Numbered from the stretch's first letter, positions 1,599 through 63,950 are shown. The stretch is 64,000 nucleotides of DNA from Gnetum montanum (GCA_015680685.1 MNCI01000744.1:47783-111782), one strand, 5' to 3'. Notes: generated from the sequence alone by a model not told the origin. A program made the numbers and translations.

Positions 1599-4500
1599 CT
1601 GCAAACAATGTCTATTTAACTGTGTTAAATTATTTAAAAAAAAACATACACATACAGAAAAAGAAAATTCAAAGAAACCAAAAAATACAGAGTATTTTAC
1701 AATCCATCAACCTTTTAGTATAATTTTAATGTACCATCAACAAACAAAAGCATCATATATAAACAAAGGAATCAACACTTGTTAATCAACTAGGATGCAG
1801 TGCCATCTTTTTGTACAAACAACATAATTACTTTATCTTATATGTTGTCAAAAGTGATAAATTAGATGGACTTAAACTTGTTTTCAAACCTCATATATCA
1901 TTAAATATGAGTCTTATGGTTACATGTTAATGTAAAAATTTTTAATTTGACTATCTAAGAAAAATTACTATTTCTTACAATTAAAAAATATATTTTTTCA
2001 TTGTTGAATGAGACAAAGAAAGTTTAACACCATTCTAGAATAATACTTAAATATTAATGGAAATATAGAACTTTGAATGGAGGGCAACGCAGCAATCACA
2101 AGGACCTTTATGGGCAAGACAGGCAGGCCGGGCAGGACAAGCAGAGTGGCTGGGGTAGGTAGGATGACATGCAGGCCAGGCGGAGTGGATGCTAGGGGAG
2201 GGATGAGGGACCCAGACACAATGGGTGGCCCAGCTAGGGGGGGATTGCATGGCTGATGGATCAAGAGGCCTAGTGAAGGGGAAAGGCAAGAGTCGATAGG
2301 AGAAAAATGGGTCAGTTTGGCGACCGAGGATTGGGGGTGTAGACAAGTGTGTGCAAGACAAAGGCTCCTTGCATTTTAAAATGCAGGCCAAGGAGGGTCT
2401 GTGGGCCATGGACATAGGTTTAATCAACAAGTTCTTCTTTGCTAGTGCACCACTGCTGCTTGAACAGGTAAAGAAGTGGGTGGTGATTCATTCGAATTTC
2501 TACCCCGTCAAGGTACACTATCTTGTGGGTAGGCTCTTCTTGTTTGTCTTCAAGTGCTTGCAAGACAGAGAGTGAGTTCTGATGGGGGGCCCAAGCTCTT
2601 TGGGGCGAGGAGTTTGACGTTGACCTACTGGTAGTCAGGGGCCCATAGAGATCCCAAGTTGTTTTCCAAGGCCCTAGTCTAGGTCCAGGTGTCCGATATC
2701 CAATGGGAAATCTAGACAAAGGAGTTTCTTCATACCTTGGCCAGTTGCCTTGGTGAATTCATTTGTTTCGACTATGCAACAGGTTCCCTAGAGTAGATGG
2801 TCTTTGCCTATTTTTGTGTGTGGTGATCCCTTTCGCTTGAGGACCTAATTCAAGAGATTACCCTTGATTACTCAGCAAGGGATGAAAAGGTGAGAATAAA
2901 GTATGAGAATGTGAAGGTTGATCCCTCGGGCAGTAAGGAGACCTCAGGAGTACATTCATGTGCCATCTGTGGAAAGGCTAGTCACCTGGCTGTGGCCTGT
3001 AAAGTTGGGCGTAAGGCATAGGCTCCAAAGAATGGAGGCAATGATTGGACCCTGGTAACTTGACAAAGGCAGGTGATGCAACATCAAGACAAGAAGATAG
3101 AGATTTTGAAGATGGGAGGGAACTCAAAGTCTCCACGGCAAAAGTCATCGATGGTTGCAAGGGGTCATGAGCCTAGTCACCAGCCTATCCAAGAGGTTAG
3201 CAAAGGAGACCAATTGTCTTAGGGTGTGATGGAGGACCTGCCTGTGCAACCTACTTGTCAAGAGGAGGATCCAGGATCACCACTTTCACTAGCATCTAGT
3301 AAGTTGATGAGGTTGTTTGGATCATCAGGCTCTCTGGGGTCGCCTGGCAAAGGTGACTCTTGGGAGGAGCTCAATAATGCAAAGGCCAAGCTCCCCCGCT
3401 TGATCGATTGGATTTTGGTGGTCAAGGGAAGCCCCATGCCATCTATAGAGGAGATTGTGAGAAGCGATGGTGGTGCAAGGTATGAGGGTGCTTTTGTGGT
3501 CTCGTTTAATGTTGATAAAGTGGGGAGGTCATCGACTTCGCTTGCCCTAACCAAGTAAACTTAGATGGAGGTGGATTTGGGGGTCCAGCTGACCCTCAAT
3601 GAGGTCTATAAACGCACAAGATGTCAGACATGAGGTTCCTTTCATGGAATTGTAGGGGGCAAGGTACCTCCTATAAACGCAATACCCTAAAGGAAATCGT
3701 GAGGCAAGAGAAGTGCGAGGTGGTCAATATGCAAGAAACCAAGTTGTAGCAGCCGAAGTCTCATTGGCTCTAGTGGCCAAGATGGCATGTTCAAGTCGTC
3801 CCTAGTTGAGGTAGGGTGGGCAATTTGGCCCTACTATTGCAAGAGTGGTTGGAGGTGCTAGACTACTCTAGGTGGAGTATTACAGCTCTTCTTTCAAATT
3901 CCAGAATTTGGATTACAAATTTTTAGGGGGCCAAATATTGGGAGGGTTGTTTTCAGGAGTTGTTGCAAGTTGCAGCACTCATGCTAGACTAGCAATGTTG
4001 GATGATCCTTGGGGATTTCAACCAGCACCTCTATGGATGGGAGAAATCGGGTGCAAGAGCTAAAGATCCATCAGGAGCTCAGGAATGCCTAGAATTTCTA
4101 GAGAAGAATGAGCTGGTCGATTTGGAGATTCAGGGGTGCCAATTCACGTGGAGTAACCAACAAAAAGGGAATGACTAGGTTTTGACCAAGTTTGACTATG
4201 TCTAGGTCAGTTTCCATCTTTTCATAACAAAAGGGATCATGGCGTTGGGCCTAGAAAGAGTGGCCTTGGACCATTGTGCTATCATTTGTTGTGTGGGTGA
4301 TGGTCAACCAAGGAGAGCAGGGCCATTTTCGTTTGAGCATTATTGTATCCACAAGTCATGGATGTGACTACTAGTCACCGAAATCTGGGGAACATACATG
4401 TGGTCTCAAGACCCTCAGGATTTCCTAAAGTATGGGTTATCTCGATTAAAGTAGTCTCTGAAACGGATCAATGCCGAGGAGAAGTATTCGTTCAGAAATG

Positions 4501-7500
4501 AGAGAGGGAGGCTCACACAATGGCTTCTAGAGATCCAGAATAGATAAAAGGCTAGTTAGGATCTGGAGCAGGAGAAGAGGGAGGTTCTCACCCTGGTGCA
4601 GGCGATGGACCATGCAGCAGAGGCCTACTAGTGACAATGGTCTAGGATGCAATGGCTGAAAGATGGGGACTGAAACACACATTTCTTTTTCACGGAAGCC
4701 TCAACGGCAAAAGCGGATTTCTCATCTCTCCTTCCAAGGACGTGAGATTGTGGGGGAGGAGAACATTGCTCAGACACTGATGAAATTTTGGTCTGACATC
4801 TAGAGGAGCCAACCAGTGCAATTGCTATCTATTAATGTCAAGTATGTTCTTCAAAATGAGGATAATTGTCATTTGTTGTCCCCACCTTTCCATAGCTGAG
4901 TTGGAGGAGGCCTTGGGATCCATGAAAATAGGTACAGCACCAAGACCTAATCGGTGGTTGGTGAAATTCTTTCGAAGCTTCTAGGACCTTCTTCAGGACA
5001 ACATCCTTGATGCTTTCAATGCTATGCTACATTGGCGTCAAATTCGCTAGGAGATAAAATGCGCACAGATTGTGTTAATCCCAAAGTCCAATTTGGCTTT
5101 GAAACCTACCCACTTTCATCCAATCGAAGTTTGCAACACCTTGCTCTATCTCTTTTCCAAGGTGCTAGTGTTGTGGTTAAGTCCGCTGATGATTGCGCTA
5201 GTAGGGGCAAATCAGGCAGGGTTTATTCATGGCAAGCACATCCAACACCAGAACCTTTTGGTGCAAGAGGTCTTACATTCACTCAAAATGACATGTTTCC
5301 CCAGGTTTGTTTTAAGCTCAATATTTCAAAGGCTTATGATACTATATCATGGGAAGCAATAGAGACAATTATGCTAAGAAAAGGGTTCCACCTCAAATTT
5401 GTACAATTATGCCTACCCATTCAATGGTCCAGGGGATTTCTGCTGCACTTAAACGGAAAGTTATTGGGGTTTTCCTCCCTAGCAAGAGGACTACGACAAG
5501 GGGACCCATTGTCCCCCTATTTGTTCACCATGGTCATGGATTCCCTGTACGCATATGCTAAGGTAGAGGGGGTTAGGGGGTTGGAGGTTGCGAGAGTTAA
5601 TCGTTGGTCAAACATTACGTCGACGATATGATTATGGTCTCCCATGTAGTTGTCCTGCAGGCCATTGTAATTAATAATCCACTAGTGCGTCTGGTGGCGG
5701 AGGTAGGCTTGGCGATCAATAAAGGGAAGTCATCAGTACATTTGTTAAACACTCTTGCCAAGGTATGGGGCCTAGTCATTCAGACTTTGGGGGTGCTTCC
5801 CGGTTCATTGGAGGATGCATACTTGGGACTTCCCTTGTATCACTGGCAAAAGAAGAACATTTGGAGTGGTTTAATGCAACAAATTCAAAAGAGAACATCT
5901 CATTAGACAGCTCATTTGCTAAGGCAGGCGAGTTGGGCACTTCTAGCCTCTTTGGTTTTGGCTACCATGGCTAAATATGTGGCTTCAATGGCTTGGCCAC
6001 CTATGGGGAAGGTGGAGAGGATTGATCAAATTGTACGGAACTTCACGTGGTTTGGGGGCAAAGGGGGACAATAGCTCCATTTGGTCAAGTGGGATGTGGT
6101 GGGTCTCTTGAAGAAGGCTGGGGGATGGGCATACCGGAATTTCAGGATATCATTGAATTCGGGAACCATGCCCTTGCTAATAGGATTTTTAGGCCAAAAC
6201 TAGACCCACCACAATGGTCACAGTTGATGGCAGGGAAGTACCAGAGTTGGGAGGCTCGTTCACATGATTCACATGTGCAGGTCCATCTACCAACATGTCA
6301 AAATGGTGATGCCTTGGAGACTCTTGGGGGTCCCACCAAAGGATCTTATTAATCATAGATACCCTGTAGTTCATGATTCAGGGGGATTATGGAAGGGTAA
6401 GCTTCTGAAAAGAATCAATTTTTTCTTATGGCTAATACAGCATTCTGCACTTCCAGTACAAGCAAAACTTAAATGATGGGGGATTAATGTTGAGGACACA
6501 TGTCCTCTATGCATGCCCACCGTGGAAACACAAGAACACCTCCTTTTAAACTACATTTTCACTAGACAAGTTATTCAGGCCACGAATATTCAACAAAATT
6601 TGAAAATTTTCAGCAATTTGATGGCTTCGAAGATTCTTTGGGCATTGTGAAAAGCGCACAATTCACAGGTGTTTCGAGGTGTTGCACTACCCCCACCGGC
6701 ACAAATTGCTACATAGGGCATCAGGCTATGGGTGGAAGCAACAATGGCCATGGAGGTGACACCAACGGTTGAGCCCAGTTGTCATGCTTTTCAGGCCAAT
6801 CCAACTCTCTGGGAGTTGGTGCAATGAGCTGGATGCGTGAACCTTCTCCCTCAAATGCAAGGGGACACGGATTTGGCTGATGAAGGCTTCTTTAGGAATT
6901 GGATGCGTAATGTCACTGTATTTAGGGAGGTGCATATCACTTTGACCATGGAGTCGGTTGCGACGTTGTTGGGCCTACCTTTGGACAGAAAGGTCATCTC
7001 CATCCGCGGGAGGGGATTACAAGACGTTGTGGACTTTTTCTCTAGGCCCATTCCCAAGACAGGGAGTGGTCAAGTCTTGCAGTCGACACTACCTACCCTG
7101 TGGCAAGATGTCGCAGAACTGGTTAAACTATTCTTCATCCAGTCTAGTAACATTTCTAAGCTGATGGGGCTCCACTTCACCTTCATGTGGTGTCTATAGG
7201 GGGATTTGCAAGTCAACTTACTAAATTTTCTCCTAGCCACCTTAAGAAGACAATGATGGGGTCGGCACTCCAGTCTCATCTTAGTGCTATGGTGGGCGAT
7301 GGCTACGAGGGTTTCCTTAGCAAGAGCTGAGGTTGCAAAAGCTTCCTCTTCGGGGGCTAGGGCTTCAACGGGTAGGGTGTATGTCCAAAAGTAGACGAGA
7401 TGTCTAGGGCCGATGGCAATGGAGATCACCAACGGATCGAAAGGTCATGAGGTTGGGGGGTGGTGGCAGATACATTGGATAGTGGAACCCCCGTCCCAAG

Positions 7501-10500
7501 AGCCTAGTGTGACTAGGGGGGTTGGGGAGGAAGTGCCAACCGAGGGTGATGCTCATGTTGGGGGGCGACGACACTAAGTGTGCACCAGGTGGAAGAGGCC
7601 AATTGGCAGAGGCGATGGGATGACCATGTAGCAAAGCTTCGATGCCAACTGGAGGAAGCAACGTGATTGAGGGCCTCTTTCAAGGAAGAGGTGGAGGCAA
7701 TAGCCAACTAGGCCAAACTAGAGGAACGGGAGAGATGATAGGTGGTGCTGACCAAATGCAAGATGGAATTCTTGCACCAGAGGGAGGAGGACAAGCACCT
7801 ATGGCAAGAGCAAGAGCACCATATGAGGGATCTAGCTAAGGCGATAGCCAAGGAAGCCATGGAATGGGAGCTACGGGAGCATTTGACAATGGAACTCTAG
7901 GAGGAGGCTCACCTACAGGAACTTTGGGAACAAGAGGGACAGGAGCATCATGTGCATAAGGAGCAGGAGGTGGTCAAGATCCAACCACAATTGGATCGAG
8001 CACACAAGAAAAGAACCAAAGATTGGCTGGACTAAGGGCAATGCCCATACATGATTATGAACATTGGACACTCCATATCTTGGCATGATGTGTGGTGCCA
8101 CATCAAATGCCATGGGAAAGATTTGCATTCAAACTGCACAAGCACATATGAGGAATGAAGAAGGAAGGTTGAGCAGTTCAAGTCATTTCAAGAGGTGGCA
8201 CACTTTGTTGATTCCAAGCACCATAGACATATGTTGGACATAATCCATGAGGAGGTGAGGCCTTACTATGAGTGCTCGAAGCTCCCCACTAATCCTTAAG
8301 GGTTCGATCTCTGGGGGTGGGGCCCCTTGTTGTGTTTTGGTTCTAGGCCAGTTGTTTAAGCATTGTTCTATGTGGTCCCCTTTTGTTAGGTGTGGCTCAG
8401 GTTAGTTTTTGTGTCCTCCTTTGTATTGTCATATGGCTGGTTTGGTTGGGATGTCCTCCATCCAATTTTGTCTATGTGGGTGGTTGGCAAATCTTGGCCA
8501 GTTTAGGGCTTTCTTGCTTTTGTACAGTTGCGTTTGTTAATCTAACACCTAATCTTTTTCAAAGAAAAAAAAAAGATTAATGGAAATATGACTTATGGTT
8601 TATCTTTGTATATTAAATATTTTAATTAATAAAATACTATCAAAATTCAAAGTCATCTAATCCAGCTCAATTTATGTTTTCAAGCCTACAAATAGGGAGG
8701 GTTTTACATTTGCAGGTACTTTTCTACCATGTCAAGACCACAAACTATTTCAAGTGAGCAAGTGTTAAGATCCACTTTCTCTCTTGTTTGTTTACACTTT
8801 TTCTTTGTTTGTATTCTTTAGGGAAAAAAATAGGTTTACACTTTCTTTGTTAATTTAGGTCCTTCATAATTTACGTTAGATAGATTTCTTTGCTTTTAAA
8901 AAAATAGCTAACTATTCATCCATTGTGTTTGGATATGTTTCTAAGAATATAATGTTTTTTAATATCCTGTTGTGTTTGGTGTTAAGGGACTATCATTTAG
9001 AGAGATCGTAAGGTGCCTAATTCTGAAGTCAAAAGACATGGGTTCAAGCCTAAGCACAACAACTCAAAGATGTTACACTTTCACTCATCCATCAATCCTA
9101 CTTCAAGGGATGAGAATTGAGGCTTCACATAATGATACTTTTGTTATGTGCTATTATGCAATTTTAATTTAATTTTCTATATAAATAGCATCACATTGAA
9201 ATTTCAAAATTTTTTAACTCAAAATAATAGTTAAAGCCATGATGAGCAAAAAGACTTAACCAATCTAAACATGTGTTGCCCCTAGCGTAACGTTAACCTT
9301 AACTGTAAACTATCTCTATGTAAAAAAATAAAAATAAAAATAAAAATAAAAACCTTTCCATTCATACCTATTGCCATAATAGTGAATCATTTGCTCAAGG
9401 TTCTTGACCAAGCTTCAACAAACAGTTTGTAGCTTTTGCTACATTGGAATTTATTTATTTATTTATTTTGGAAAACTCTTTGGATAGTTTTAACAAAATA
9501 TGTACAGAAAAAGTACAAATCAGAAAAACAAAAATGAACCAGAAAGGTCCACAACCAAACAACAAACGAGGAGCCCCCAAGCATCGGGCAAACGAGTTCC
9601 AATACAGCCAAAAGCAGGCATGACCAGCCCCAAAAATTTGCAAACAAGCCGTGGGCAACCCCAAGCCAACAAGAGTGATGCAAAGGAGCATCCCACACTA
9701 GGATTCAAAATAACAAACTAAAAAACTAAACCGAATCGATGAGGTGTCGAAACAACAAAAACAGACAAATCCCCCAAGCCAAACAATAGGACATGATCCT
9801 CATAGAGTACAAAAAGGAAAACCATGAAAAATGCCCCCACCAATATGGGTGTCAGGGCAACCTATCACAACAGCAGTGTGGAATGTGGGTAGCGTATAGC
9901 TCATCTAGCTACATGCAAAATTCATGCGTTGACACAAAGGCCACAGCCTCTTAGAAACATTTGAAAGCTTCCACCGTCCGGGCTTGTTCTTCAATGGATC
10001 CACTTCCATCAGGATGGAGAGGGGCCGGAGCAATGCGAATGTGACGGCACAATGCTAGCCACGTCACCTCACGGTTAATGCGCATCCACATATATGGGCA
10101 TTTCCCAACCTATAGCCAAGCCATGGCATTAGACTTATGAGCCCACATCATTTGGTCTTGTTGTTCTATGTCTTCCTGAGCCTCATGAATTTGCTGCTCT
10201 TTAGCCTCTTGTTCTTGCACCTTTGGCACTACGCCTCATTCTCCATCTCTACCCTAAGCTCAACCCAAATTCATTCTTCAAGTGTATTTTGGGCTAAATT
10301 AGCATTATCAATGCATGTTTGAAGCCTTTCACTAAATCCTTAGTCTACATCTAAAGTTTCCGTTGTTTCTAGTTTTTTCTTTCTTTCTTTCTTTCTTTTC
10401 TTTTCTTTTCTTTTTTTAAGAAACGTCAAGATTATATTACAGCCCCAAACAAAACCATGGAAATAGAAGACATGGGGGCCCAAGAGCAGCATCAAGGAGA

Positions 10501-13500
10501 GCAACACCCTAGAGAAGGGGGTAGAGCTCCCCAAAACAAGGCAGCAGAAAATGACACCACATAGTGCCATAGTAAGAGGGAGAAGAGACAAATTTGCCCA
10601 ATATCCAAGCCAACTAGACAACCATTTTGAAAACCAAATCCCAAGAAACCAATAGACTGCACCCCTTCTTAACAATTGTGAAATTCACCATCAAATAGGT
10701 AAGAGGAGTCTAATACAAGGGCAACATGGCCTTTCCAACATGTGGGCCAAGTCCAAAACATCCTTGTGGTGCTCAAATGCCACAAAAGTTGTAGCCTTGG
10801 ATATGATTTTAAGATTTTAAGTTTTAGATGTTTTCACATTTGTACTATACCTTGGATGCAAGGGGTATTGAGAGATGTCAATTATCATATTGACAATCTC
10901 TTACTACTATATCCTTGGACCATTGATTGCATCACATAATTTTTTTTCTTCTACTTTATTTTAATTCATAGTTATTTATGTTAGTCAATATGCAAGTTGA
11001 ATTTCTAATAATTGATCAACTGTTTGGAAAAAAAAGTTTACCCTTGAATTTTTAGTGAGCTTGTTGGGGACTTCAAGTACTAACTCTTGACCCCTACAAA
11101 TAGGTGTTACAGTATCCCTCACATAAAATGGCAAACCGTGATATAGGACACCAATGGTTATACTCGTAAACATTATATAATGAAATGGTGGAAGTATAAA
11201 AGTGTAAATAACATGCTAACAAATATTATGGAGTTCACGAGTTCACCACAAGGTTAACTAATAAACATAATGGAAAATTGTGGATATAGAACTCCATATT
11301 TTATGATGTATCCCCATGGCTTAGGATATAACACAATGGTTTAGCATATAAATGGTAGTATAATTTATATATGAATGATAAACATCACTAGATACCATAG
11401 ATTGAAGAACCTATGAATATAACACCAACACAAGCTTTAAACATACTACAATTAATCATGGTTGGCACGGTTTAACACTAAATGCAACCCCTATGATATC
11501 TATTGTATTTAGAAAACATGGAACACAGTCTCTAACCATTGTAGTCAACAACCATCAGGAATATCAGCAATTAAAGGCCAAACCGTGAAGTATATCTTTC
11601 ATGGTTATGAACCACAAAGAGAATTCTCAAACTCCAAGTTCCTCTCTTTTATACCTCCATAGGAAATTTTATGACTATTCAGTCACATGTCTTTTAATAA
11701 ACTACTAACCATCATTAGTTTATGATAAGCACTATGTACGATTTAACATATAGATCCATTAATAATGTAACATGTTGAGGTTTCTATTAAGAACCATCAT
11801 TAGTTTATGATAAGCACTATGTACGATTTAACATATAGATCCATTAATAATGTAACATGTTGAGGTTTCTATTAACTCAATATTCTTAACAAAGTTGTCT
11901 AGGAAAGGCATATGGTAAGTAAAGCAAATAAACAAATTTTCACGTATTTAACAAAAAGTGTGAAAGTAACATAATTTTTTAGTAATGTAAATTAGATAAA
12001 TAAACTCAGACAACGTTAATGGAGTAACCAGTCAACGAGATGACAGCTCAAATGATAATTTGTTGGTATACTAACAAATAAGTTATGATTATATTAACAT
12101 CAGCTCGTTGTACACACTAGGGATCACACAGTAAATGGTTCTTCCTTCAAACACAGTAAGACCTATCATAACTATAGCAGAAATATTTCTGTTCTTAATT
12201 ATATTTTGATAGAAATGCTAATAGTTTTGCATCATTCCATGCCCATAATTCTACAGAAGGATACCACCGTGATGCAATTTCATTTGGAAGCACGCAATTT
12301 AACTTCTTAACAGCAATAAATCTATTTTGAAATTTGAATGTTATATTCCAACAGTTTCATGCCTGACTAAGAAACTTGACTGAAGTAGACGACGAATTTC
12401 CTCCACGGAGATCCATTGCATAAACAGTTCCATTTTTGCTTCCAACAACCACTACCTGTTGAGCAAGAAGAACTTTTGTTAATTTTCTGTGCATTCTATT
12501 ATAATAAAGATTTAAAAAGTAACTCTTACAAAATGCACATTATTTTCTTTTCGTAATGTTCTTAATGCTTTTTCCAATCTATCTTATGTATTAAGGGACC
12601 AAATCAGATGGTTTTACAGCTGGCCACTCAGAATGAATTAATCCCAACATAAGAGTCAAAGCCCTGCCTCTCATTCAAGAGTTGCAGATGCCAACAGCCT
12701 AATATGTCATGGGGACTAACATTTTTCTTACAGTTTGCAAAAAACCTTATACAAATATATAAGTTCATCAATCACATGAATTGGTTATCCTGAACATCAA
12801 ATTAGCATCTAACAAAATATTTAAAAATCAACTTTCTGTTTCTGGCATTTTTACCTGCTCATCTGTTGTCAGTTGAAGACAGCTAAGGTGGTTTAAATGG
12901 GGAACAGACATTGTAGAGCATGAAAGCTTGCTAGCTCTTCTATCCCATTGATATAAAGCACCATCTAGACCGCATGCAAACACTCTGTCATGTTCAATAT
13001 CAAACTTAGATGCTTGAAAATTAATTAATGTCAATCAATGCTTCATTACTATATATTTAAATACTTAAATATTAATAATTTTAACACAGTACTGAGATTA
13101 TGTAGAACTGTTGATTCGAAGAAACACTTATGGAAATTACAAGCAAAAGTTGTTGGCCAGATGCATTTGCTCAACACTTTACTTTTGTATGTATCTTTTT
13201 TTTTTTTTTTTTTTTTAGNTTTTTTGAGCTGCAGCGAGATTCTTCTTTGGATCATAATTCATTGGAAATGGACAATGTTGCCAAGCAAAATATTAAAATT
13301 CTCATCCGATACAAATTTACTGAAAAAAGCTACACCCAATAAAAGCTGCCTTATTCCAAAGTAATTATATAGAAATATAATGAAAATAGCAATGAAAAAC
13401 AAACTATAGCAGCCCACTTTTGCCCATGTCATCTTCATACTTAATATCCCATGTTATGTTGTCAGGCTTCTTAGAAATTTCCGTGATGGGTTGTTGGTCT

Positions 13501-16500
13501 AATTGAAGGACCAATTAAGTCCTAAACTTCATTAAATGGTCCTTGTCCATAGTTGCATTTCTCACATTGTGAAAACAGGAATGGCTGGAAAAAGAGTTGA
13601 GAAGTTTTTAAGGGTTCATTAAGACGTAAATCCATCTTGGTAGTCAAAGCTTGCTTGGAACATGCATGTCACTTAGGTATAGTTTGTTTTCTCTATTTTG
13701 CTCATAAATTAGAATTTTGATTCCCTTGTTAGTGATGATTCTTCTCTTGAAGGCAATTATTATTGGTTCTTGATAGTGATAGTTTCATGGTTGTTTATCT
13801 TCTTTTTCTCCATGTATTCTTATATGCACACATACCTTCAAATATGTTCTATAATGAAAAATCAGAATTCAAATCCCCCTTCAGAAAAGCAAGTGTTCTT
13901 AACTTCATGCATTCTTTATGGGCCAACATGTAATTTTTTAATGCATATCAGGAAAATTAAAAAATGGTTATGTAGTCAGCTACCGGTACGCAAGTGTGTC
14001 TCATTTTATACTACTATTCTCTACTCAAAATGTCAAAATTACCCCAAAAACAAAACCATTAAATTTTATATAAAACATTTTAAAAAACATATGAGTCACG
14101 TTATACATTTCCTCGTGAATAAAATCACAATATTTTATATAAAACATCAAATCATAAATCCCGTTACACCTTTTCATACTTTGTTTCTTGATTGTGGGTA
14201 AACATTCACCACCATTCCTGAAAATTGTCCACCAACATGGATACTTGTAGCTGTGAATTTTGAAGCTGTAAATTTCTTTGGAGCTATTCCAAGTCAATTT
14301 CTGTTTCTGATGCCTGTGCTGGGGAGCTGTTTGACCGCGGCAGAGTCTTATTTGGTTTCAGGCTTTCCACAGTTTTTTTTTTTTTTTTTTTGAGAGAGAA
14401 TGTTCGGGTTTGTATTACTATAAAGTATGGTACACAAGCATACAAAATAAAGGGACATCAGGGATGGCCCACCGGAAAGGGGAGGAGGTGGAAGCCTCGG
14501 TACCCCTCATAACCGCAGAGTTCAGAGCGCGAAAAGCTCAGAGCTCAAAANNNNNNNNNNNNNNNNNNNNNNNNNNNNNNNNNNNNNNNNNNNNNNNNNN
14601 NNNNNNNNNNNNNNNNNNNNNNNNNNNNNNNNNNNNNACAGGCACACTGAGGCCGTTCAAGCTCATGTAGCAAGTCCAGGGTGTTGCGGTGCTCTTCGGT
14701 GTCCATGAAGTTCGCCGCTTGTTGGATTCCCTGCATAGCAGCCTCTCTCCTGCTCCGGTCAGCCGATGAGTCCCCTGCATCCGGATGGAATTTTGCTGAC
14801 GTGCGTCTAATGTGTCGCCTGAGTTCCCCCCAAGAGCTCTCACAACTAATGCCCAAGAGGCTGTATGGGCAACGCCCCCCCCCCCCAAGCCACTGCCAGG
14901 CATTGTGCTCGTGCGCCCGGTCAAGCTGCCTTTGTCGTTGCTCTTCTTCTTCCTGCATGTGTTTCTGCTCTTCCCGAGCGGCCGCCTCTTGGGCTTGACG
15001 GGCCACCTCCTCCTGGCGCAGCTCCTCTCTAACTTGGTCCCGGAGCTCATCAATGAGTTGGGCACGAGAGGCCTCCATCATGATCGTGTGTTGTCGGGTC
15101 AGCTCTTGTTCTCGTTCGCGGAGCTGGGCCTCGTGTTCGGCACGAGACTTGGCCAGGGCCTCGGTCCACTTTGCCTCCCATTCCCGTTGTTCAGCCTCCC
15201 ATGCAGCAGCGGCCGCCCCCTACTCGGCCTGATGTAATTCCACCGCCCAATTTGGGGGGGCGCTGGGGGGGTCGGGCATGGGGGCAAGTTTTGATGGGAT
15301 CGGCGCCCCCAGGTGAGGCCCAGAACCGTCTGCGGCTGTTGAGTGGCCAGGCTGGGGGGCTGGGATGGTAGGGGGGGCATCAACGATGCACCCTCCAGGG
15401 AGAGCAGAAGACGAGCCCGGTGCCCCCCCCCCCNNNNGCCCCCCTCCTCAACGCCAAAATCAGCCCCGAATGGCGACCTCATCTCTTAAGAAGGAGGGTC
15501 TCAAGAAAAAACCGCGACAGGTTAATCTGGACACCAAACTTCAAGCACCGCAGGAAAGTGAAATGTAATCCCTGGAGCTTTGACACGTTGCTTGACTGGA
15601 CGAAAAAATGGTCCACCAAGTCTGCGGCCCGGGCCCAGAGGCGTGGGAGAGAAGATAGGGGGATCTGGCGGCTCTGCGTTCTTGGGGCCGACCCCTCGAA
15701 AAAGGTGGCGGCATCCTGGAGGCCACGGGTTGTGGGCAGGACGATTTCACCAGCGGCCGGGACCCCCAAACAGCTGGCAGTCGCAGATTCAGTGACACGA
15801 ATCTCGCATCCTTGGAAGTAGGTTCTGTCATTGTGCCAGTTAGTAAAAAATGGGGCGTCAGCAAGGTCAAGGTCGCCGACCAGCCGCTGTAGCAGGTCGG
15901 CCCAGCAACAACGGATAACCAACTGCCATAGCTCCTCGTCTTCCCGGTACTTGGTGCAGTCAGGCTCAAACATTGGTGTGGCTCCCATTGTATCCATTAT
16001 CTCTCTCCATGCTCTTCAGGTCTGCGCGATTTTCCGCTGGGGACGGGGTGTTCTGTCATGCAGAAAAACCGTGCGGTTACGCACCTTCCAGGCGTGCCAT
16101 AAAAGCAGGGATGCCCAGGAGTTGCCATTAAGCCATCTCGGGGGGGCACCGCCGTTGCGCGCCAGATGGCAAGCATGCAAGGGCACTCATGAAGAAAGTG
16201 TGTGAGGTCTGGGCCGGTTTCACATCGTGGGCACGTGTCATCATGCATGATGCCGCGTTGCTGCAGTACGGTGCGTACGAGAAGCGCTTCAGATTTTATG
16301 AGCCAGAGGAACATTTTGATTTTCTCGGGGAGCTTCCCGCACCAGATCTCCTGCCAGCCGTCCTCCGGTGGGTATTTTTGTGTCAGCATGGCGCACGGCT
16401 CGAGGTGGGTCCAGCCCAGATGTATCATTTCCCGTGCGTGCCGGCAGATTGTCTGCCAGGGCCGCGATGAGCACGGTCCAAGTTGCCATGGCGTGTACTT

Positions 16501-19500
16501 TCGTTGGGTGATGCAGGCCCAGTGGCTGAGCTCCCCTTGCATGCGCGTCAGCCTGTGGACGAGCCATTGTTGGCCCATCATCCTTTCGTCCTTGAAGGAC
16601 GTGACCCCCAGCCCCCCCGCTTTACGAGGGTGGGCAATGCGATGCCAGTTGACTAGATGAAGCTTGCTCCCCCCTTTGCCCCCCCCNNNNNNNNNNNNNN
16701 NNNNNNNNNNNNNNNNNNNNNNNNNNNNNNNNNNNNNNNNNNNNNNNNNNNNNNNNNNNNNNNNNNNNNNNNNNNNNNNNNNNNNNNNNNNNNNNNNNNN
16801 NNNNNNNNNNNNNNNNNNNNNNNNNNNNNNNNNNNNNNNNNNNNNNNNNNNNNNNNNNNNNNNNNNNNNNNNNNNNNNNNNNNNNNNNNNNNNNNNNNNN
16901 NNNNNNNNNNNNNNNNNNNNNNNNNNNNNNNNNNNNNNNNNNNNNNNNNNNNNNNNNNNNNNNNNNNNNNNNNNNNNNNNNNNNNNNNNNNNNNNNNNNN
17001 NNNNNNNNNNNNNNNNNNNNNNNNNNNNNNNNNNNNNNNNNNNNNNNNNNNNNNNNNNNNNNNNNNNNNNNNNNNNNNNNNNNNNNNNNNNNNNNNNNNN
17101 NNNNNNNNNNNNNNNNNNNNNNNNNNNNNNNNNNNNNNNNNNNNNNNNNNNNNNNNNNNNNNNNNNNNNNNNNNNNNNNNNNNNNNNNNNNNNNNNNNNN
17201 NNNNNNNNNNNNNNNNNNNNNNNNNNNNNNNNNNNNNNNNNNNNNNNNNNNNNNNNNNNNNNNNNNNNNNNNNNCGATCAAAACCTTTTTTATGCATGAT
17301 GTCTTGTAAGGCATCCCAACTAAGCGTGTCGTATGCCTTTGCTATGTCCAGCTTGAGACACATACCAGGAAAACCCGTGGTACGAAGGGAATGGAGGACC
17401 TCTTGCATGAGAAGAACCTGATCTTGGAGGGTCCTACCTTGAACGAAACCCGCCTGATTGCTTCCAATCAACTTGGGCAGGAGGGGCCCCAGGCAGTTGA
17501 CCAGGAGTTTGGAAAATATTCTAACGAGGACATTGCAAACTCCAATGGGACAAAAGTGTTCCGGGCGGTGGGCGTCCAACTGTTTTGGGATGCAAACGAT
17601 TCAAGAGCAGTTGAGTTCACACCGCACTTGTCGTCTGGCCAGCATGACGTTGAAAGCATCCAGAAGATTGGGCCCCACAATATCCAGGAAGACTTTGAAG
17701 AATTCCAGCGACCATCCGTCCGGTCCAGGCGCTTTGCCTCCCGGCATGTTGTTGATGGTGTTAGTCAGGTCTGGCCAGGAGAAGGGGGCCAGTAGACGCC
17801 GATTGTCCGCTGCGTTGAGCACTTTCTCCACATGGACTGAGATGGGTTGAGTAGGTCGCTTGGTCCAGACTTCCCCCCAGTAGTGCGAGAGCTCATTGGC
17901 GATCCCCTGCGGGTCATCGATCATCTCCACTGTCTGGGTGCGGAGGCAACGGACCTGAGTTTCGCCACAGGCCATGGCGAAAAAGAATTTTGTTTGTCTG
18001 TCTCCCTCGCGGAGCCATCTGACCCGGGATCGCTGCCGCCAATATGTTTCCTCCTCTTGGTCAAGATTCTGGAGTTGACGGAGAAGATGCATCTCCTCCG
18101 AGTACATGTCCGCCCCAATCTCTTGTTGTGCCTGGACGTGGCTTAGCTACTCCCAAACCATCTTGTGGCCAGCCCGAAAGGAGAATTTCTCCCCCACCAG
18201 GAGGGCTCGGATGGCCCACTTGAGCCAAAGGAGAGCATCTTTGAGGAAGCTCCGAGGGTCCATCCGATTAGGCTGGTAATCGGCCCAGATGTCCTCAACC
18301 AAGGGGCGTAGCCACGGTTTGGAGAACCATGTGGTCTTGAACCGAAGGGGGCATGGGGCCCGAGGCTTAGGCGGGCCGATGGACACGACCAGCGAGCGAT
18401 GATCAGAGGCGGCCCGTTCTTGCCCCGTCACGGTGATGGCGGTACCGAGGAGGAGATCGAAGCTGACACAGACTCGATCAATGCGGGAGAGGATACGGTG
18501 CACCCCTTTCCGCCGGTTGCTCCAGGTGAACCGGCAGTTCGCAATGGGTAAATCAACCAAGGAAAATCTATTCAGGCAATCCATGAAATCCTACGCGCCT
18601 GGAGGTGGGGGGCGGCCCCCCCAGACTTCTCCCAAGGGTGCAGACGTTGGTTGAAGTCGCCAACCACCAGCCAGGAGCAGCGGTTGGGCACCAGCTGGGC
18701 CACGCGGTTCAGCTCACGCAGCCATGACTCCTAGTCTTGCGCCCCATAGAAATTGGTCAGCCAAAACCCGTGGGCTGGGATGTGGATTGTAATGGCCCAT
18801 GGGGATGCATCCACTAGAGTGGCGGTGGCCCGTGCGAGAACGGCAAGACCGCCGGCTCTGCCCTGGCAGGGGTGCAAGTGGGTGGTCCAGCCCGCCCACT
18901 GGAGGTGGCCAGATTCTTCCGCTTGCAGTTTGGTTTCTTGTAGGCAGACCATATCACAATTCTCCTCTCTGACAATACGTTGCAGGGTATTTCGTTTATA
19001 GGGGGTACCCTGAGCCCTGCAATTCCAGCTGAGAATCTTCATGTGCAACCAGATGCGCGGCGTTGGTAGACCTCCCGTAAGGTCTGTTGTTGGCCCAAAT
19101 CAATGTTTCGTTGAGCTTGTCTACTTCGGGACCGATGCTCGGTCGGTCGGCCTGGGTGTCCCTCCCCATCTCATACCATAGGGATACAACCGGCCTCCTC
19201 GGTTGGGGACTGCTGTGCCTTGCGCTATCTGGTTCGGGTGCTCCCCCGGACAATGTTAACCCATTCCCCTAAGGGGGGGAGCTCTGGTTCCAGTTCCTGT
19301 GGGAACTGTGGGCGTTGCTGGACGGTTGGTACCCGGGGGGCAGGTGGGTGGTGTCTGGTAGTTGTGAGTGGTGAGATGTCCTGGCTGGGGATATGTGTGT
19401 GGTAGTGGGAGAGAGGGGGTGTGNNNNNNNNNNNNNNNNNNNNNNNNNNNNNNNNNNNNNNNNNNNNNNNNNNNNNNNNNNNNNNNNNNNNNNNNNNNNN

Positions 19501-22500
19501 NNNNNNNNNNNNNNNNNNNNNNNNNNNNNNNNNNNNNNNNNNNNNNNNNNNNNNNNNNNNNNNNNNNNNNNNNNNNNNNNNNNNNNTTGGTTGGATGAGG
19601 GGCGTAGCCATCCCTTACGGCCCATGATGACCCAGTTGCCCCCCTCGAACAACTGGCAAGCCGGGTTAGTCGGTCTTGACCTGCGGAACCTACAGTTCGC
19701 CTCGCGATGCCCAGGCTTGCCACAGCACCCGCAACCGTTCAGCCGGTCCACTCGGGTGGTTGAGCCATGCAGCGTGGGAGCTCCAATGTCCAGGTTTTCA
19801 AAGGTAATCTGGAGGGGTTCCTCCCCCCCGGGGAGTTCCAACACGACCTCCCGAACGAGATCGGTCTCCAACAGGTTGCGCCAAACGCAAAATCTAGCAA
19901 AGCCCATCCGCTCCATTGACCTCGTAACCCGGTCGAAGGCGATGAAGTCGCCGAAGTGTCCCGCCACCTCCTTTAGGAACTCAAGGTATGCATTCTTCAG
20001 ATTAAATTTGTGAGTTCCTTTACCCTTTCCCTGTATTCCAACTTTAGTTTAGTGTGTAGTCTTGTGTGCATGGGATGATGGGGTGGTTAGAGATTGGAGT
20101 GTTGTGGAAGTGATATTCCTTTCTGGATTCAAAATTTGCAAGCTTGATTTTTCCTCCCAAGTTTCTTTTTTCTTCATGCACAGAATTCTGATTATCATTT
20201 GACACAGGGAAGGTAGCAGTGCTGAGTGTTTCATGTATGTTGGTTATTCCCCTTTTTTGCCCAACTATAGTCCGAATCCGTTTATGTGTGGCAAGTCTTC
20301 TAGTCAATATGTATACAGTGTTTCGCTATAACTTGAAATTGTTAATACTACATTACACAAACTGTATACATCTCCAATAACTGCCCGTAACCTTTTCATT
20401 CCTAGATATACAAGATTCCGAGCAGCATATCGTTCTTTTTTGCATGGGTGTTTCCAACTTGGTGATTCTTATTAGTATTTGAACAGTAAAAAAACATACT
20501 GAGACTAGAAAAACAACACACAGTGATTCAAGCTCAATGTCACCAATTTCCCTATGTTTCTAAGGAGTTATAGAAGAAAAAAAATGGCCTTCTAAATTGT
20601 AATTGGTTGACCAAGACTAACTATTTATAGCTGACCCTGTGAGCCAATATTGTGTACTAGTAGTTAAAGATTCCTTCATTTAGTGTTTATGTAACATTTC
20701 ATTCTCGGATGTCATGGCAAATGTCATATCACATAATATTTGACATTATGCATAAAAAAATAAAAAGGAAAATGTAAAAGAAAAATGAAAAGAAATGCTT
20801 TATTAAAATGAAAATAATGTATCTGAGTCACGGTCTGAGGGTTCCTTAGGGTTGGCTTCCTTCAGCATCTATTCCTTACAGGCATTCTGGCATTGCCACC
20901 ATGATTAGGCCTATAACCACCCAGAAGGGACCGCCAACCACATGCTTGTCCTGCTTCACCCAACACCCATTAATCATCATTGATAGCTCCACAACTCCAT
21001 GCTAATACAACCTTTGATGTCCATGTATAAATATCTTAGGTAAAACCCTCAAAGGTCATCTCAAGGGACATGCCCATTATTAGAATGCACCCTTTTCGGT
21101 CTTAATTACAACTTACCCTTTCCAGTCTTCTTACAACTATGTTTTACTAAGGTGATGGAGTCGACAATATTAGTGAGCATCAAGGTTGATGAAGGGGATG
21201 GAGCCTAGATTTATGTATGTATTTGTACTTTCATTTATAACTTAACTTATGAGATGAACATATTTGCTTAGGGCTTTGGCAAGGACAACCGTGGCACTAG
21301 GCACATAGGGTGATGTGACGTACAAATGCATTTGGTAGGCTTGTGGCACATGTACTTGAAATCTATTTTTTGACAAGAGTTCAGGATTTATTAATTAAAA
21401 TTAAAAGAAATATTTACAAATAGGATCAATACACCCGTCAGACACCATTCAACATGCAGGTGCCTCTCTAACAAACCCAACATGATCTCCAGGTGCTACC
21501 ACAAAAACAGAAACCTTCATCGTATTTTGCAATCTCTCCTACCCCAAAACAAGGTCCCGAGACCATTTCAGACACATCTAGCACAGCGCAAGACCCATAC
21601 AACATAAGCTCAACAACACAGCCCAAAATGCCCCAACAATCAATCACCAACAAAAAACTCTCATCCATCCAAAAGACCTAACTCACATTGGGTTATCTGC
21701 AATTGCTGCTACTTCCCCCAGTAGCTGCCTAGGCCAATCCCAGGCAGCGATCCCTCCCAATCCTAAAACTGCTTTGTGCCCTGCTATGGCTATTCTGTCC
21801 CAAATCGCATTTCCCTCTCAACCTTTGTGCAAATCTGCTCATGCAAGTCATCCAGCATGAGTTGCAATCTCATCACCTCCTATTGCAACCAAGTCCTACA
21901 AATCAAACCTTGCTACTCTTCTCTTTGCCTCTTCGCTAGATCCACATCCGTCCACAAGTCCCACTCGCGAGCCACCCAATGAGCCTCCCAAGCATGCCTT
22001 TTGACAGGCCGAGCTTGCTCAACCACATCCCTACATGCCTTTCGTACCTCGGTCTGCATCATCGACCCCTACTCACGCCCATCACTGGTTCCACGAGACA
22101 AACTACCCTTGTCACCCACCTCCCAATCCTAGGCAAAGCCCAACTCAATGCCCGAAACCTCCACCATTGGTAAACCCATAGAGGTGCCAAACTCACCACC
22201 AACAGCACCATGGTCCCATACCACCAAAGAGCCTAAATAAGGCCCAAATGTCTCCCTGGTCTTCGATGCTGCAACGGGTGCAAAAAGAAATGCAGCAGAT
22301 TAACATGCACACCATGATTTAGGTAGTGCAAGAATGCAAAATGCACACCAATTATCTTTGACACAGTTCCAGATTGGACAAGGAACCTATCAACCAACAC
22401 CACCATCGTCTGCCAAATTGGCAACAACGTAGTTCTTGGCATGTGACCACTAGTCATTTTCAACATTCTACCACAGAAAAATTCATTTCCGTACACATAG

Positions 22501-25500
22501 CTATTCATCACCAGCAGAATCTCCTCTCCCTCAACTGATACACCTAACACCTCTGCCACCACCAATTTGGTTAAGACAATTCTCTTTCCATGGAACATCG
22601 GCTCCTCTCCCTCCTAGTTCCCGAAAAAATTATCATCCGTGAGGTCTGGCACTCCTTCGATCTGGGGCAGAAATTCCTCCCACTTGATCCGTCGAACCAA
22701 CATCCACAGCTTGCCATTTCCTTTGAAATCCTACACCGCTGGATCTTGATATTGTTTTAGCCTCATACTATGCTCCACTTCCTCCCACAACCGCATCCCA
22801 GCATCAGCAACAGCAATCAATAGCAACAGCCTTTGCACTCTAAAGATCAAATTGTTGCAGTGCCTCCACACTACCCAAAACACTACTGTCACCTTCTCAT
22901 CCCTATGCAGTCAGACTTCTGAAGCAAGCCCAATAGCTTGCCAAGTGTCCATCACGTAAGCACATCAATACAGTAAATGATTAATGGTTTCATCAACCGC
23001 CATGCATAAGGGACATCAAGGGTCAATATCTAGGCCTCTCTCCTTCAAGAATCCCTATACCAACAACACCTTGTGTGCAATGAGCCATGTGAACACCTTA
23101 ACTTTTTTAAGTAACCTACCTTGCCATATGGCCTTCCAGCCAAGAATTGGTGGATACCTATTCTAAATTATTTCTCTAGGCGGCTTGCCCTAATAGTTGG
23201 CACTATCTCATCTGCATCACATCTCTACACAACTCCACACAAAACCACAATCACCTAGACCTAGGCTCCCAAAGTTAGTACTTCCACCTTACAACGTTGA
23301 TCGACTGCGCATGTTGCTCCCTTTGCACCATTACCCGGTTTGCCAACCTCTGCATCCCCAACAGAACTTCATCATTGAAGGTCAACATTCCAATTCCCCT
23401 TGCATTCATGGGTCTTGCCATTTTTCCCCCAACAAAGGAGGTGAAGTTTGTCTCCTCCCTTCTCTCCTAACCAAATGAAATGTTGAAGGATCTGGTCAAT
23501 TTTTTGAACCACCCCCACCACAGGACAAGCCATGGAGGTCGTAAACCTTGACATTGCCATCAAGACAAACAAAGCTAAAAGGATTTTACCCTTCCTAGAC
23601 ATAAAGTGATTAATCCAATTTGCAGTCTTCTTTTCTAATTTTTGAACCAAGGCATTCCTCGTTGGCCTCTTGTTCTATTCAAACACCAGCATCCCAAGGT
23701 AGGAATCTTGCAACATCTCGGACAGGATACCCAAAGGTTGGCAAATCCTACTCTTCACTTGCACCTCTGTATTGACTAGGTGCAACGCCAACTTTTCCTT
23801 ATTGACTTCCAACCCTAGCTCTGTCTCCATCAACGCCAACACTTTCTAGAGCGCCATGGCCTGAGGCACAGCTGCCAGAGAAAAAAGGATAGTTTCATCA
23901 ACATAGTGCTCTACAATGCAGTGCATCCCTACCACCAACACACCACAAAATCCCTCCATCTTGCAGTACCCCTACAACAAGTCCATCATGAGAATGAACA
24001 GTAGGGATGATAGTAGATCTCACTAATGCAACCCCCCCAGACACCTCAAAACCCCAAAGCCAACCCTCAATATCAAACAAATACCTTCCTGACACCTGAA
24101 TTTGAAGACAAAGATTCACAAATTTAGGTGCAAATCTTTTTCACAGCATCATTTCCTATAATGCCCTCCAGCTTACCGTACCATAAGCCTTCTTAATATC
24201 AAGCTTCATACAAATCTAAGGGAAGCCCGAAATCCAAAACGAATGTGGGATTTTTTGTAACAAGATCACCTGATCCTATAGGAAATGATCCTTCATGAAT
24301 CCTGCCTAATTCTCCCTTACTAGCCAAGGCATTAGCAACGCCAACTGTTGCACCAACATCTTATTGAAGATCCTGATAAGGGTATTACAAACCCCAATTG
24401 GCAAGAAATATGCAAGCGAAGATGGCATCTGAGTTTTGGATACCAAAACAATCCATGAACAATTGATCTCCCGACATACTTCCTACCATCACAGCATATT
24501 GTTAAAAGCATCCAAAAGATTCTCGTCGATAATATCCATGAATTCCCTAAAGAATTTGATGGGCCCACCAGTCAGGCCCTGGTGCCTTGTTAGTCTTCAT
24601 TATGCCCATCATTGTCTCTAGTTCCTGCAAAGTGAAAGGTCTAAGCAATGCTTGGTTTTCAACAATCCCAATAACCTGTTGAACAAGCACTGATAAAGGA
24701 GTAATTTTTTTTCTACTCCACATATCCCCCTAGTGCTATTGCACCAGTTTGACAATCTTCTTCCCATCATCCGTAGCAACCCCTTCATGTAACAGCCTCA
24801 GTTTGTTTTTCTCCTACCCTTGCACCTTGGCCAATGCAAAGAAGAACCATGTTTTTTTGTCCCCCTCCCTAAGCCACGTGATTCTGGCTCGCTACCTCTA
24901 GTAAACCTCCTCCTCAGCAACATTTGTTCCTCTACCACCAAATCTTCGCTATGCTCTTGCCTTGTCTGAACTACTATCAATCATTGGGACAGCTGAGTAT
25001 GATAGGCCCAAAACCCATATTTATCTATCATAGCCCTATCCTTAATATGCATCTTGAGCATTTGAAGGCCCTATTTTAGGAAATCTCTAGGCTCCCTCTC
25101 CCAAGAATAATTTTGCCATATGTCTTGCACCATTGACCTCAGCCATGGCTTAGAGAGCCACGTACGTTTGAACCTAAATGGCCTAGGAGCCACACCCTGG
25201 TTGTCTCGCAATTCACACAAGAGTGATGTATAGTCGAAAGCTGGACACTCCCTGCCCATCACATGAATGTCAAAACTAAGTACTAACCTCGTACTTACCC
25301 ACACCCGATCAATCCACGACCATACGCAATCTTTACCTTTTCTCCTGTTGCTCCACATGAATCTACACCCATCCACCTCCATGTCCACAAGGTTATGCCC
25401 TCGAAAAAATGCCAACAATTCCTACCTTCCCAAAGGGATAATGCCCTCTCCTCCAATCTTTTCCCATGGGTAGAGATGTTGATTAAAATCCCCTATCAGG

Positions 25501-46500: not shown

Positions 46501-46645
46501 CTACAACTCCCTCAACTGCTCATCCCACCTCTGTGCTTCATAGAAGTTTGTGAGCCAGATTCCCCTCTGTCAGAGGAGAATGATAACACTCCACATGGAT
46601 GCATCAATAGTCTTGAAAGGCCAAAGGGAAAGGGAGGCCAGCAAC

Positions 46646-46676
<31 letters not shown>

Positions 46677-63679: not shown

Positions 63680-63950
63680 GGCGGACACAGGCTGTGGAAC
63701 AGACGCTGGAGCTGACGCTGGAGCAGACGCTGGAGCCGACGCTGAAGATCAATGGAGCAGACGCTGGAGCCGACGCTGGAGCAGACGCTAGAGCCGACGC
63801 TGGAGCAGACGCAGACCGTGGAGCAGACGCTGGAGCAGACGCAGACCATGGAGCGGACACAGACTGTGGAACAGACACAGACCGTGGCGCGGACACAGGC
63901 TGTGGAACAGACACAAACCGTGGAGCAGACGCCGACGCCGACGCAGCCGG
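63680..63950. repeat. GC/CpG-rich minisatellite of 12- and 18-bp units
   Basis: GACGCTGGAGCA/GCC and GTGGAGCAGACGCAGACC-type units. Confidence 0.85.

Follow-up and report, generated by a model that had tools for sequence, protein, structure and literature searches.

We examined a long interspersed nuclear element (LINE), designated e1, and the related copies around it in a 64,000-nucleotide stretch of the Gnetum montanum genome (GCA_015680685.1, MNCI01000744.1:47783-111782; this whole stretch is referred to below as the window). The second open reading frame (ORF2) of the element continues past its zf-RVT zinc finger for ~520 codons in the same frame, which encode, in this order, a middle domain, a linker, a charged helix and a J-domain. 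We consider it likely that e1 and its relatives represent an old and diversified lineage of plant L1-type LINEs, in which ORF2 extends into a four-part accessory module ending in a J-domain that would recruit host Hsp70. This reading is carried by the architecture of ORF2, the continuity of its frame, the identity of the J-domain, the purifying selection on the extension, its co-divergence with the reverse transcriptase (RT) and its place in the transcription unit of the element. The coordinates of all copies and their parts are collected in Table 1.

An L1-type LINE with an extended ORF2

LINEs of the plant L1 clade have an ORF1 with a zinc knuckle and an ORF2 composed of an apurinic/apyrimidinic (AP) endonuclease, an RT and zf-RVT, in some cases together with an archaeal-type RNase H. 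This architecture has reportedly been described by Smyshlyaev et al. 2013 and Heitkam et al. 2014. On the basis of its target-site duplication, A10 tail, ORF1 with a CCHC knuckle and endonuclease-RT-zf-RVT order, e1 is an L1-type LINE. The A10 tail is followed by one G directly before the second copy of the duplication (ATTAATGGAAATAT), which places the inserted body at 2067-8575. The ORF pieces of e1 matched Exo_endo_phos (E 7e-4), Exo_endo_phos_2 (E 3e-3), RVT_1 (E 3.9e-9) and zf-RVT (E 3e-4 and 1e-3) in Pfam, with the domains in the expected order, and the RT piece matched R2 and LINE-1 ORF2 proteins in the PDB (E 5e-9 to 1e-6). Hallmarks of plant L1 elements are present among the copies, namely zf-RVT at E 4.9e-13 and, in the copy c7, an ORF1 that matches DUF4283 at E 1.7e-14 and is homologous to ORF1 of e1. 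Sequence reading and Pfam thus confirmed the duplication-bounded, poly(A)-tailed LINE that a first-pass annotation of the window had placed at these borders. The same annotation called it full-length, which holds for its extent; its integrity is another matter, as the longest ORF in this heavily decayed copy has 199 amino acids.

ORF2 of e1 runs from the ATG at 3621 to the stop at 8297-8299, corresponding to ~1,560 codons. Like other plant L1 LINEs, the family shows a target-site duplication, poly(A), an ORF1 with DUF4283 and CCHC, the endonuclease, RVT_1, zf-RVT and frequent 5' truncation. Unlike them, it carries after zf-RVT the ~520-codon extension with its VANC/PMD-like domain (PMD, plant mobile domain), linker, charged helix and J-domain, and no RNase H domain was detected in the e1 and c2 pieces scanned, as the annotation had stated. 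The core of the element is an ordinary plant L1-type LINE; it is the tail that is likely, if not proven, to be new.

The reading frame runs from zf-RVT into the extension

We translated the junction between zf-RVT and the extension in three frames in five copies (e1, c2, c3, c4 and c5). A single frame leads from zf-RVT via a WKxRN-type motif into the extension in e1, and the same single frame is found in c3, where the first stop occurs only well inside the extension; in c2, the frame is unbroken from the WKxRN motif onward. Upstream of the methionine that begins the middle domain, stops are found 12 (e1), 10 (c2) and 7 (c4) codons before it, and c5 and c3 have sense codons there. The stops lie at non-equivalent positions, indicating that there was no ancestral stop and that the extension is a continuation of ORF2. 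The stop that closes the 172-residue ORF of c2 (15479-15481) is private to this copy, because related DNA contigs and all of the covering RNA reads (7/7) differ there. Neither an internal poly(A) tail nor a target-site duplication was found between zf-RVT and the extension in e1.

The C-terminal domain of the extension is recognised as a J-domain

The J-domain makes up the last ~80 codons of the extension, and the ORF ends ~15 codons past it. The extension pieces of e1 gave no Pfam match, so the assignment comes from less decayed copies. Against the Pfam DnaJ model (PF00226, cut-off 27.8 bits), c2 scored 28.4 bits as a whole ORF and 30.4 bits as a domain piece (E 4e-7, model positions 2-63 of 63, HPD motif present), and the 95-codon piece of c62k scored 24 bits (E 4e-5), which is below the cut-off. 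When a profile built from the pieces of seven copies (A3) was run against the PDB sequences, 32/32 chains at E up to 1 were J-domain proteins, the best at E 7e-4. The AlphaFold2 (AF2) model of the c62k piece (mean predicted local distance difference test, pLDDT, of 70) retrieved almost entirely J-domains with Foldseek: 34/34 rows up to E 1.7 were J-domain-containing chains, and the root-mean-square deviation (rmsd) for the best row was 2.8 Å over 60 residues, with a probability of 0.99 and E 0.13. The HPD motif sits after a basic helix II of the LRRHIRR type and is present in three of the seven readable copies (c2, c10k and c62k); the others have HPN (c4 and c32k), HSN (e1) or HLE (c6). By sequence profile and by predicted structure, which agree with the Pfam score of c2, the C-terminal domain of the extension is a J-domain, as the DnaJ domain of the first-pass annotation implied.

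The middle domain, the linker and the charged helix

The middle domain was harder to place. No Pfam match at E up to 1, PF10536 and PF20167 included, was obtained for the middle domain of any LINE copy. In an exhaustive HMMER search, a profile of the copies (A1) gave 21 matches at E <=0.001 among 1.84 billion representative proteins; none of these 21 bears an RT, and among the eight for which the source was looked up, five came from Ginkgo biloba and one from Taxus chinensis. A word-indexed search with a wider profile (A2) retrieved only a multi-copy Gb_ family of Ginkgo that has no Pfam domains, and A2 found no match among the PDB sequences. Single-sequence protein searches with the middle domain and with the helix and J piece returned no matches, and their length limits make them silent on full-length ORF2 proteins. 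In a joint alignment, the LINE middle domain lines up from the N-terminal MGG.P...EP motif of the stand-alone Ginkgo and Taxus proteins, the methionine of which is kept in 5/5 LINE copies. Because the alignment begins at the start methionine of the stand-alone proteins, the capture of a whole ORF, start codon included, and its subsequent fusion to ORF2 would be the simplest reading.

The AF2 model of the c2 middle domain (pLDDT 82.8, predicted TM-score 0.78) was compared exhaustively with solved structures by VIA-align. VANC21 together with its target DNA (9lnk_A) was the sole outlier (Z 5.3, rmsd 4.7 Å, 162/178 residues), and the next row had a Z of 2.8. The model therefore suggests that the middle domain probably has the VANC/PMD fold. 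The first-pass annotation had described this region as transposon-protein-like. By sequence, that description is weak: PF20167 (Transposase_32) is faintly touched by 3 of 22 aligned relatives only (best E 0.003), and the ATHILA ORF-1 and Transposase_32 clusters retrieved from the ESM Atlas at scores of 0.84-0.85 are leads only. By predicted fold, the resemblance to VANC21 serves it better.

The stand-alone relatives in Ginkgo, among them Gb_08968 and Gb_10421, form a multi-copy family without a Pfam domain, which is probably another transposon-borne family. One of the Ginkgo gene models fuses the middle domain to the body of a PPR-DYW editing factor, and another has two tandem copies of it.

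A basic linker follows the middle domain; the c5 piece covering the end of the middle domain and the linker has an isoelectric point (pI) of 11.7. The charged segment after it comprises 40-70 residues, of which 40-68% are Glu, Arg, Lys or Gln, with almost no Pro or Gly. Its heptad pattern is weak, so that it is better described as a charged helix than as the coiled coil originally annotated.

The extension is an inherited part of the LINE lineage and is under purifying selection

We located copies of e1 by tblastn with pieces of its ORFs against the window. The extension is present in at least nine other copies, which are detectable at the protein level only, whereas blastn of e1 against the window revealed no copy at the DNA level. 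By tblastn, five additional copies matched the middle domain of e1, with E values as low as 6e-33, and eight additional places matched the J end. The recurrence of the cassette in many copies, claimed in the first-pass annotation, accordingly holds for proteins and not for DNA, and the region 6744-8299, which it took for conserved coding sequence, is coding-like and recurs by tblastn. Protein identities among the copies range from 30 to 79%, indicating that they are members of several old subfamilies and not recent sisters.

The only pair with unsaturated synonymous sites is c2 and c5. For their middle domains, we obtained a nonsynonymous rate (dN) of 0.11-0.18 and a synonymous rate (dS) of ~1.3, with a dN/dS of 0.09-0.14. 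In the other pairs, the synonymous sites are saturated (proportion of synonymous differences, pS, 0.6-0.96; of nonsynonymous differences, pN, 0.28-0.5), yet the proteins are still 30-50% identical. We also compared c2 with related copies that the reads revealed; the sample of differences is small and selected. The best-supported differences in the J-domain were synonymous third positions in six of six cases, compared with 1/6 in the helix and 6/15 in the middle domain, where the differences are a mixture that includes the CpG decay of c2 itself. The extension is under purifying selection.

The identities of the RT and of the middle domain follow the same rank order across pairs of copies: 0.83 and 0.75 for c2-c5, 0.58 and 0.50 for e1-c5, 0.55 and 0.47 for e1-c2, 0.50 and 0.38 for c2-c3, and 0.42 and 0.32 for e1-c3 (RT first in each case). 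This agreement indicates that the tail entered once and was inherited with the RT.

The module lies within the transcription unit of the element

In seven copies, the stop of the J-domain is followed by a 3' untranslated region (UTR; ~270-340 nt where measured) with TTGTACA and AATAAA-like blocks and then by A6-A19, placing the tail module inside the element's own transcription unit. The 3' ends (8485-8574 and six others, A4) share TTGTACA ~45 nt and TAATA.AAA.CC ~20 nt before the tail despite synonymous saturation. These blocks are probably the plant-type poly(A) signals of the element itself, or possibly a recognition site for its RT. We take the TTGTACA and AATAAA-like blocks to resemble the far-upstream and near-upstream poly(A) signals of plants. 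In a DNA run bearing the same species label, word depth was 2,000-3,500 over the J end versus 50-800 further 5', which is the pattern expected from 5'-truncated LINE copies.

The first-pass annotation proposed a retrotransposon lineage that captured and kept a module of the Hsp70 co-chaperone type. The data support this proposal: the J-domain is recognised by profile and by predicted structure, the extension is under selection, and the module is part of the LINE and no independent insert.

How the tail might act

The module would begin with a domain of ~170 residues, presumably captured, start codon included, from a plant gene or a transposon gene; the predicted fold of this domain is closest to that of VANC21 (PMD-type). 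The module would continue with a basic and disordered linker and a long, highly charged helix, and would end in the J-domain with its basic helix II and HPD loop. By the general behaviour of J-domains, this domain would use its HPD loop and basic helix II to dock on ATP-bound host Hsp70. Docking would then trigger ATP hydrolysis, by which Hsp70 would be clamped onto a client held nearby.

The client could be of several kinds. For the binding of their RNA, both hepadnaviral polymerase and telomerase RT depend on Hsp70, Hsp40 and Hsp90. By analogy, the most likely client is the ORF2 protein or its ribonucleoprotein, which may be assisted in cis in folding, in RNA loading or in release at the target, a candidate that we favour while rating it somewhat short of probable. 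Chromatin or silencing proteins at LINE DNA, which might be reached via the VANC/PMD-like domain, are a more doubtful candidate, also argued from analogy, and anything else would take up the remainder.

A bolder version of the same thought would make the tail an anti-silencing device. The VANC/PMD-like domain would find the DNA or chromatin of the element, and the J-domain would set Hsp70 to dismantle silencing complexes, perhaps as a free protein made from the internal methionine or from truncated copies. We regard this version, which draws on comparison with VANC and the plant chromatin J-proteins, as unlikely. Tandem motif arrays of the kind targeted by VANC were not found in the UTRs of e1. 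If it were true, the tail would have no predecessor among retrotransposons as a J-protein, nor among non-LTR (long terminal repeat) elements as an anti-silencing factor, and would be a mirror on the side of the parasite of the host pairs SUVH1/3-DNAJ1/2 and MBD5/6-SILENZIO.

Observations that weigh against the reading, and alternative explanations

Several observations weigh against an ORF2 with a VANC/PMD-like domain and a working J-domain. Foldseek found no PDB match for the middle-domain model, the Z of 5.3 to VANC21 is below the level of 8 under which the tool advises caution for fold claims, and the middle domain is not basic (pI 5.6-9.0). The Pfam DnaJ scores lie near the 27.8-bit cut-off, and the J model has a pLDDT of just 70. 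No uninterrupted ORF2 exists within the window, so that the fusion protein is read across decayed copies, and the conserved methionine with which the extension begins would allow it to be translated separately. Coverage of the whole 2-kb stretch in two runs of poly(A)-selected (oligo-dT) RNA was thin, the few reads being mostly 90-95% alike. Identical loose ends at 14700, leading into one unrelated sequence, occurred in 11 and 14 RNA reads (runs X22 and X23; window 14639-14700), indicating that a truncated J-domain fragment sits in another expressed transcript elsewhere in the genome. The RNA data show presence and not autonomous expression.

The conserved methionine leads to an explanation in which the extension is a separate product, either an ORF3 or an internally initiated protein, made from the full-length RNA or from thousands of 5'-truncated copies and acting in trans like VANC. 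The methionine stands at the start of the module in 5/5 copies and is aligned with the start codon of the stand-alone homologues, and truncated copies with the module only are the most abundant form. However, if a whole ORF was captured, its start codon would be expected to persist as a relic, whether or not it has a function today. Moreover, the interval from zf-RVT to the methionine contains no stop that is conserved: one frame runs through it in e1, c2 and c3, and the stops that occur are non-equivalent. We therefore judge a separate product quite improbable.

It is also conceivable that the C-terminal domain is a pseudo-J-domain, which no longer works with Hsp70 and is kept as a helical structural or interaction domain, the module then serving, for example, multimerisation or target-site choice. 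The marginal Pfam scores of a divergent domain, a family-specific motif in helix III/IV and the Cys-rich tail after it would fit such a role, and accessory proteins of the VANC/Athila type are predicted to multimerise through long helices (PMC13547354). On the other hand, the three best-preserved copies have HPD at its canonical place after the basic helix II, the HPN, HSN and HLE variants are what point decay of HPD would be expected to yield, and the six out of six synonymous differences in the J-domain indicate selection. Loss of the Hsp70 function thus appears distinctly unlikely.

Finally, a foreign cassette, whether an independent element inserted in LINE 3' UTRs or a one-off, functionless 3' transduction, was rejected as barely credible: although the module was clearly captured from elsewhere, given its alignment with stand-alone proteins from their start codon, it is in frame with zf-RVT and the rest of ORF2, it is not set off from zf-RVT by any internal poly(A) tail or target-site duplication, it has diverged in step with the RT across lineages saturated at synonymous sites, it is under purifying selection, and in seven copies the poly(A) signal of the element itself comes downstream of it.

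Relation to known systems

The preferred reading, a LINE replicase with its own Hsp70 recruiter, has partial parallels elsewhere. The large T antigen of polyomaviruses uses its own J-domain to engage host Hsc70 in replication. It likewise exemplifies a mobile or parasitic genome that encodes its own J-domain, but there the domain is N-terminal, the genome that encodes it is that of an animal DNA virus, and the descent is unrelated. Among the J-proteins of plant chromatin, DNAJ1/2 work with SUVH1/3. SILENZIO is another such J-protein and works with MBD5/6 (PMC8616336). In these host proteins, as proposed here, a separate reader or binding domain directs a J-domain, with Hsp70 as its partner, to particular DNA. 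They act in trans, however, whereas the J-domain of the LINE belongs to a retrotransposon polyprotein, for which any link to methylated DNA is hypothetical.

For the middle domain, the nearest comparison is VANC21, the sequence-specific anti-silencing protein of VANDAL21 (PMC5735166). VANC reportedly shares structural homology with the PMD protein MAIN and multimerises through a long helix (PMC13547354). VANC21 (of the Mutator-like element VANDAL21; PDB 9LNK) resembles the LINE module as a transposon-encoded accessory protein with a long helix after the domain, and no other solved structure stood out when compared with the middle-domain model. In contrast, neither VANC21 nor the PMD proteins MAIN and MAIL1 have detectable sequence similarity to the LINE middle domain, which has no PF10536 match. 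Moreover, VANC is a separate protein of a DNA transposon without a J-domain, and DNA binding by the LINE domain is putative.

The gain of foreign domains by retroelements has precedents. Insect R1 LINEs reportedly have a C-terminal superfamily 1 (SF1) helicase domain in ORF2 (PMC4686597). In them, too, the ORF2 of a LINE acquired a foreign domain at its C-terminus and retained it, although the LINE clade, the host and the captured domain are different. An orchid Ty3/gypsy element with an N6-methyladenosine (m6A) demethylase is reported as a further retroelement that gained a foreign domain (PMC9289625). We found no LINE or other retrotransposon with a J-domain in the literature, Repbase, Dfam and many subscription journals being outside the scope of this search.

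A tail of this kind bears on how LINEs are viewed in several ways. The usual view is that LINEs make do with a minimal toolkit and depend on host factors supplied in trans. The present lineage would be a long-lived one that built a recruiter of a host chaperone into its own replicase, beside a domain of the accessory or anti-silencing kind known from plant transposons. It offers a natural, sequence-defined handle on two questions, namely at which steps LINE replication depends on Hsp70 and whether silencing is actively fought by non-LTR elements. It also affects annotation: an ORF with a J-domain or a PMD-like domain in such genomes need not be a host gene and may be the tail of a truncated LINE, and the family is very abundant here.

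Copies and other features of the window

Table 1. Features of e1 and of its relatives in the window (positions counted from the first nucleotide of the window)
Feature	Position	Strand	Remarks
e1, 5' target-site duplication	2053-2066	+	ATTAATGGAAATAT, read from sequence; identical to 8576-8589
e1, ORF1 remnant	2077-3558	+	DUF4283-like region; CX2CX4HX4C zinc knuckle ~2950-3010
e1, ORF2 core	3621-6650	+	many stops and frameshifts; domains by Pfam
e1, AP endonuclease in ORF2	3621 to ~4370	+	
e1, RT in ORF2	~4870-5900	+	
e1, zf-RVT in ORF2	~6350-6570	+	
e1, junction	6651-6743	+	end of zf-RVT region (WKxRN-type motif), in frame into the extension
e1, middle domain (probably VANC/PMD-like)	6744-7260	+	starts at the methionine conserved in 5/5 copies; tblastn E 6e-33 and 1.5e-32 to other copies
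e1, linker	7261-7600	+	Gly/Pro/Ser/Arg-rich, poorly conserved; from translations
e1, charged helical spacer	7601-8032	+	ends in conserved LDRAH motif; from translations
e1, J-domain remnant	8036-8299	+	HPD decayed to HSN; internal stop 8156-8158; ORF2 stop 8297-8299
e1, 3' UTR	8300-8575	+	TTGTACA and AATAAA-like blocks; A10 8565-8574
e1, 3' target-site duplication	8576-8589	+	second ATTAATGGAAATAT, 14 bp
c10k, 5'-truncated fragment	9954-10235	-	charged helix and J-domain with HPD
c2, near full-length, least decayed copy	14373-19967	-	four N-masked stretches; A19 tail 14373-14391; charged helix and J-domain (HPD) 14545-15081; middle domain 15482-16015; zf-RVT 15997-16581; RT 16653-18107; endonuclease 18147-19042; ORF1 19269-19967
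c3, most divergent lineage	21366-27033	-	tail 21366-21371; J remnant ~21700-21800; middle domain 22236-22670; zf-RVT into extension, one frame, 22560-23200; RT 23450-24510; endonuclease 25140-25875; ORF1 26785-27033
c30k, 5'-truncated fragment	30084-30517	+	end of J-domain, 3' UTR, A10
c32k, 5'-truncated fragment	32502-33203	+	charged helix, J-domain (HPN), 3' UTR, A7
c4, 5'-truncated	34703-37356	+	part of RT; middle domain 35694-36164; charged helix 36588-36719; J-domain 36759-37025 (HPN); tail at 37351
c5, close relative of c2, partial	37600-40933	-	J region N-masked 37721-38004; charged helix 38005-38210; middle domain and linker 38246-39100; zf-RVT 39076-39570; RT 40264-40933
c6, 5'-truncated, extension only	40975-42812	+	middle domain 40975-41214 and 41681-41989; J-domain 42465-42812 (HLE)
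c7	44837-48079	-	ORF1 (DUF4283), endonuclease and RT only; 3' part missing
c62k, 5'-truncated fragment	62101-62796	+	uninterrupted 95 codons LDRAH-J-domain (HPD)-stop, then 3' UTR, A10

The LINE copies are strikingly clustered, with at least 11 in 64 kb. Besides c7, one further 5' fragment lacks the 3' part. For six other copies, no target-site duplication with an exact match of at least 9 bp was found, and an Rfam scan of the window gave no match. N runs at 14551-14637, 15434-15437, 16687-17274 and 19424-19586 in c2 and at 37721-38004 in c5 hide the end of the J-domain and parts of the RT and ORF1 of c2 as well as the entire J-domain of c5. Owing to this masking, c2 and c5, the best-preserved copies, look less complete than they may be. 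On the minus strand, c5 ends inside its RT at 40933, and c6 begins on the plus strand at 40975; the two are 42% identical and belong to different subfamilies, indicating that one LINE was inserted into another. The J-domain of c6 contains a 45-bp tandem duplication (42529-42622) that repeats the helix I-II region. At positions 9-146, a middle-domain fragment with 33% identity to e1 7059-7196 is probably the end of another copy that extends beyond the edge of the window.

Three tandem repeats were also noted. The stretch 11707-11875 is a perfect tandem duplication of an AT-rich 85-bp unit (2.0 copies, 100% match). A minisatellite at 50955-51186 consists of 4.4 copies of a 53-bp unit, and another at 63695-63930 is built of ~13 copies of the 12-bp unit TGGAGCAGACGC, with an 18-bp variant adjoining.

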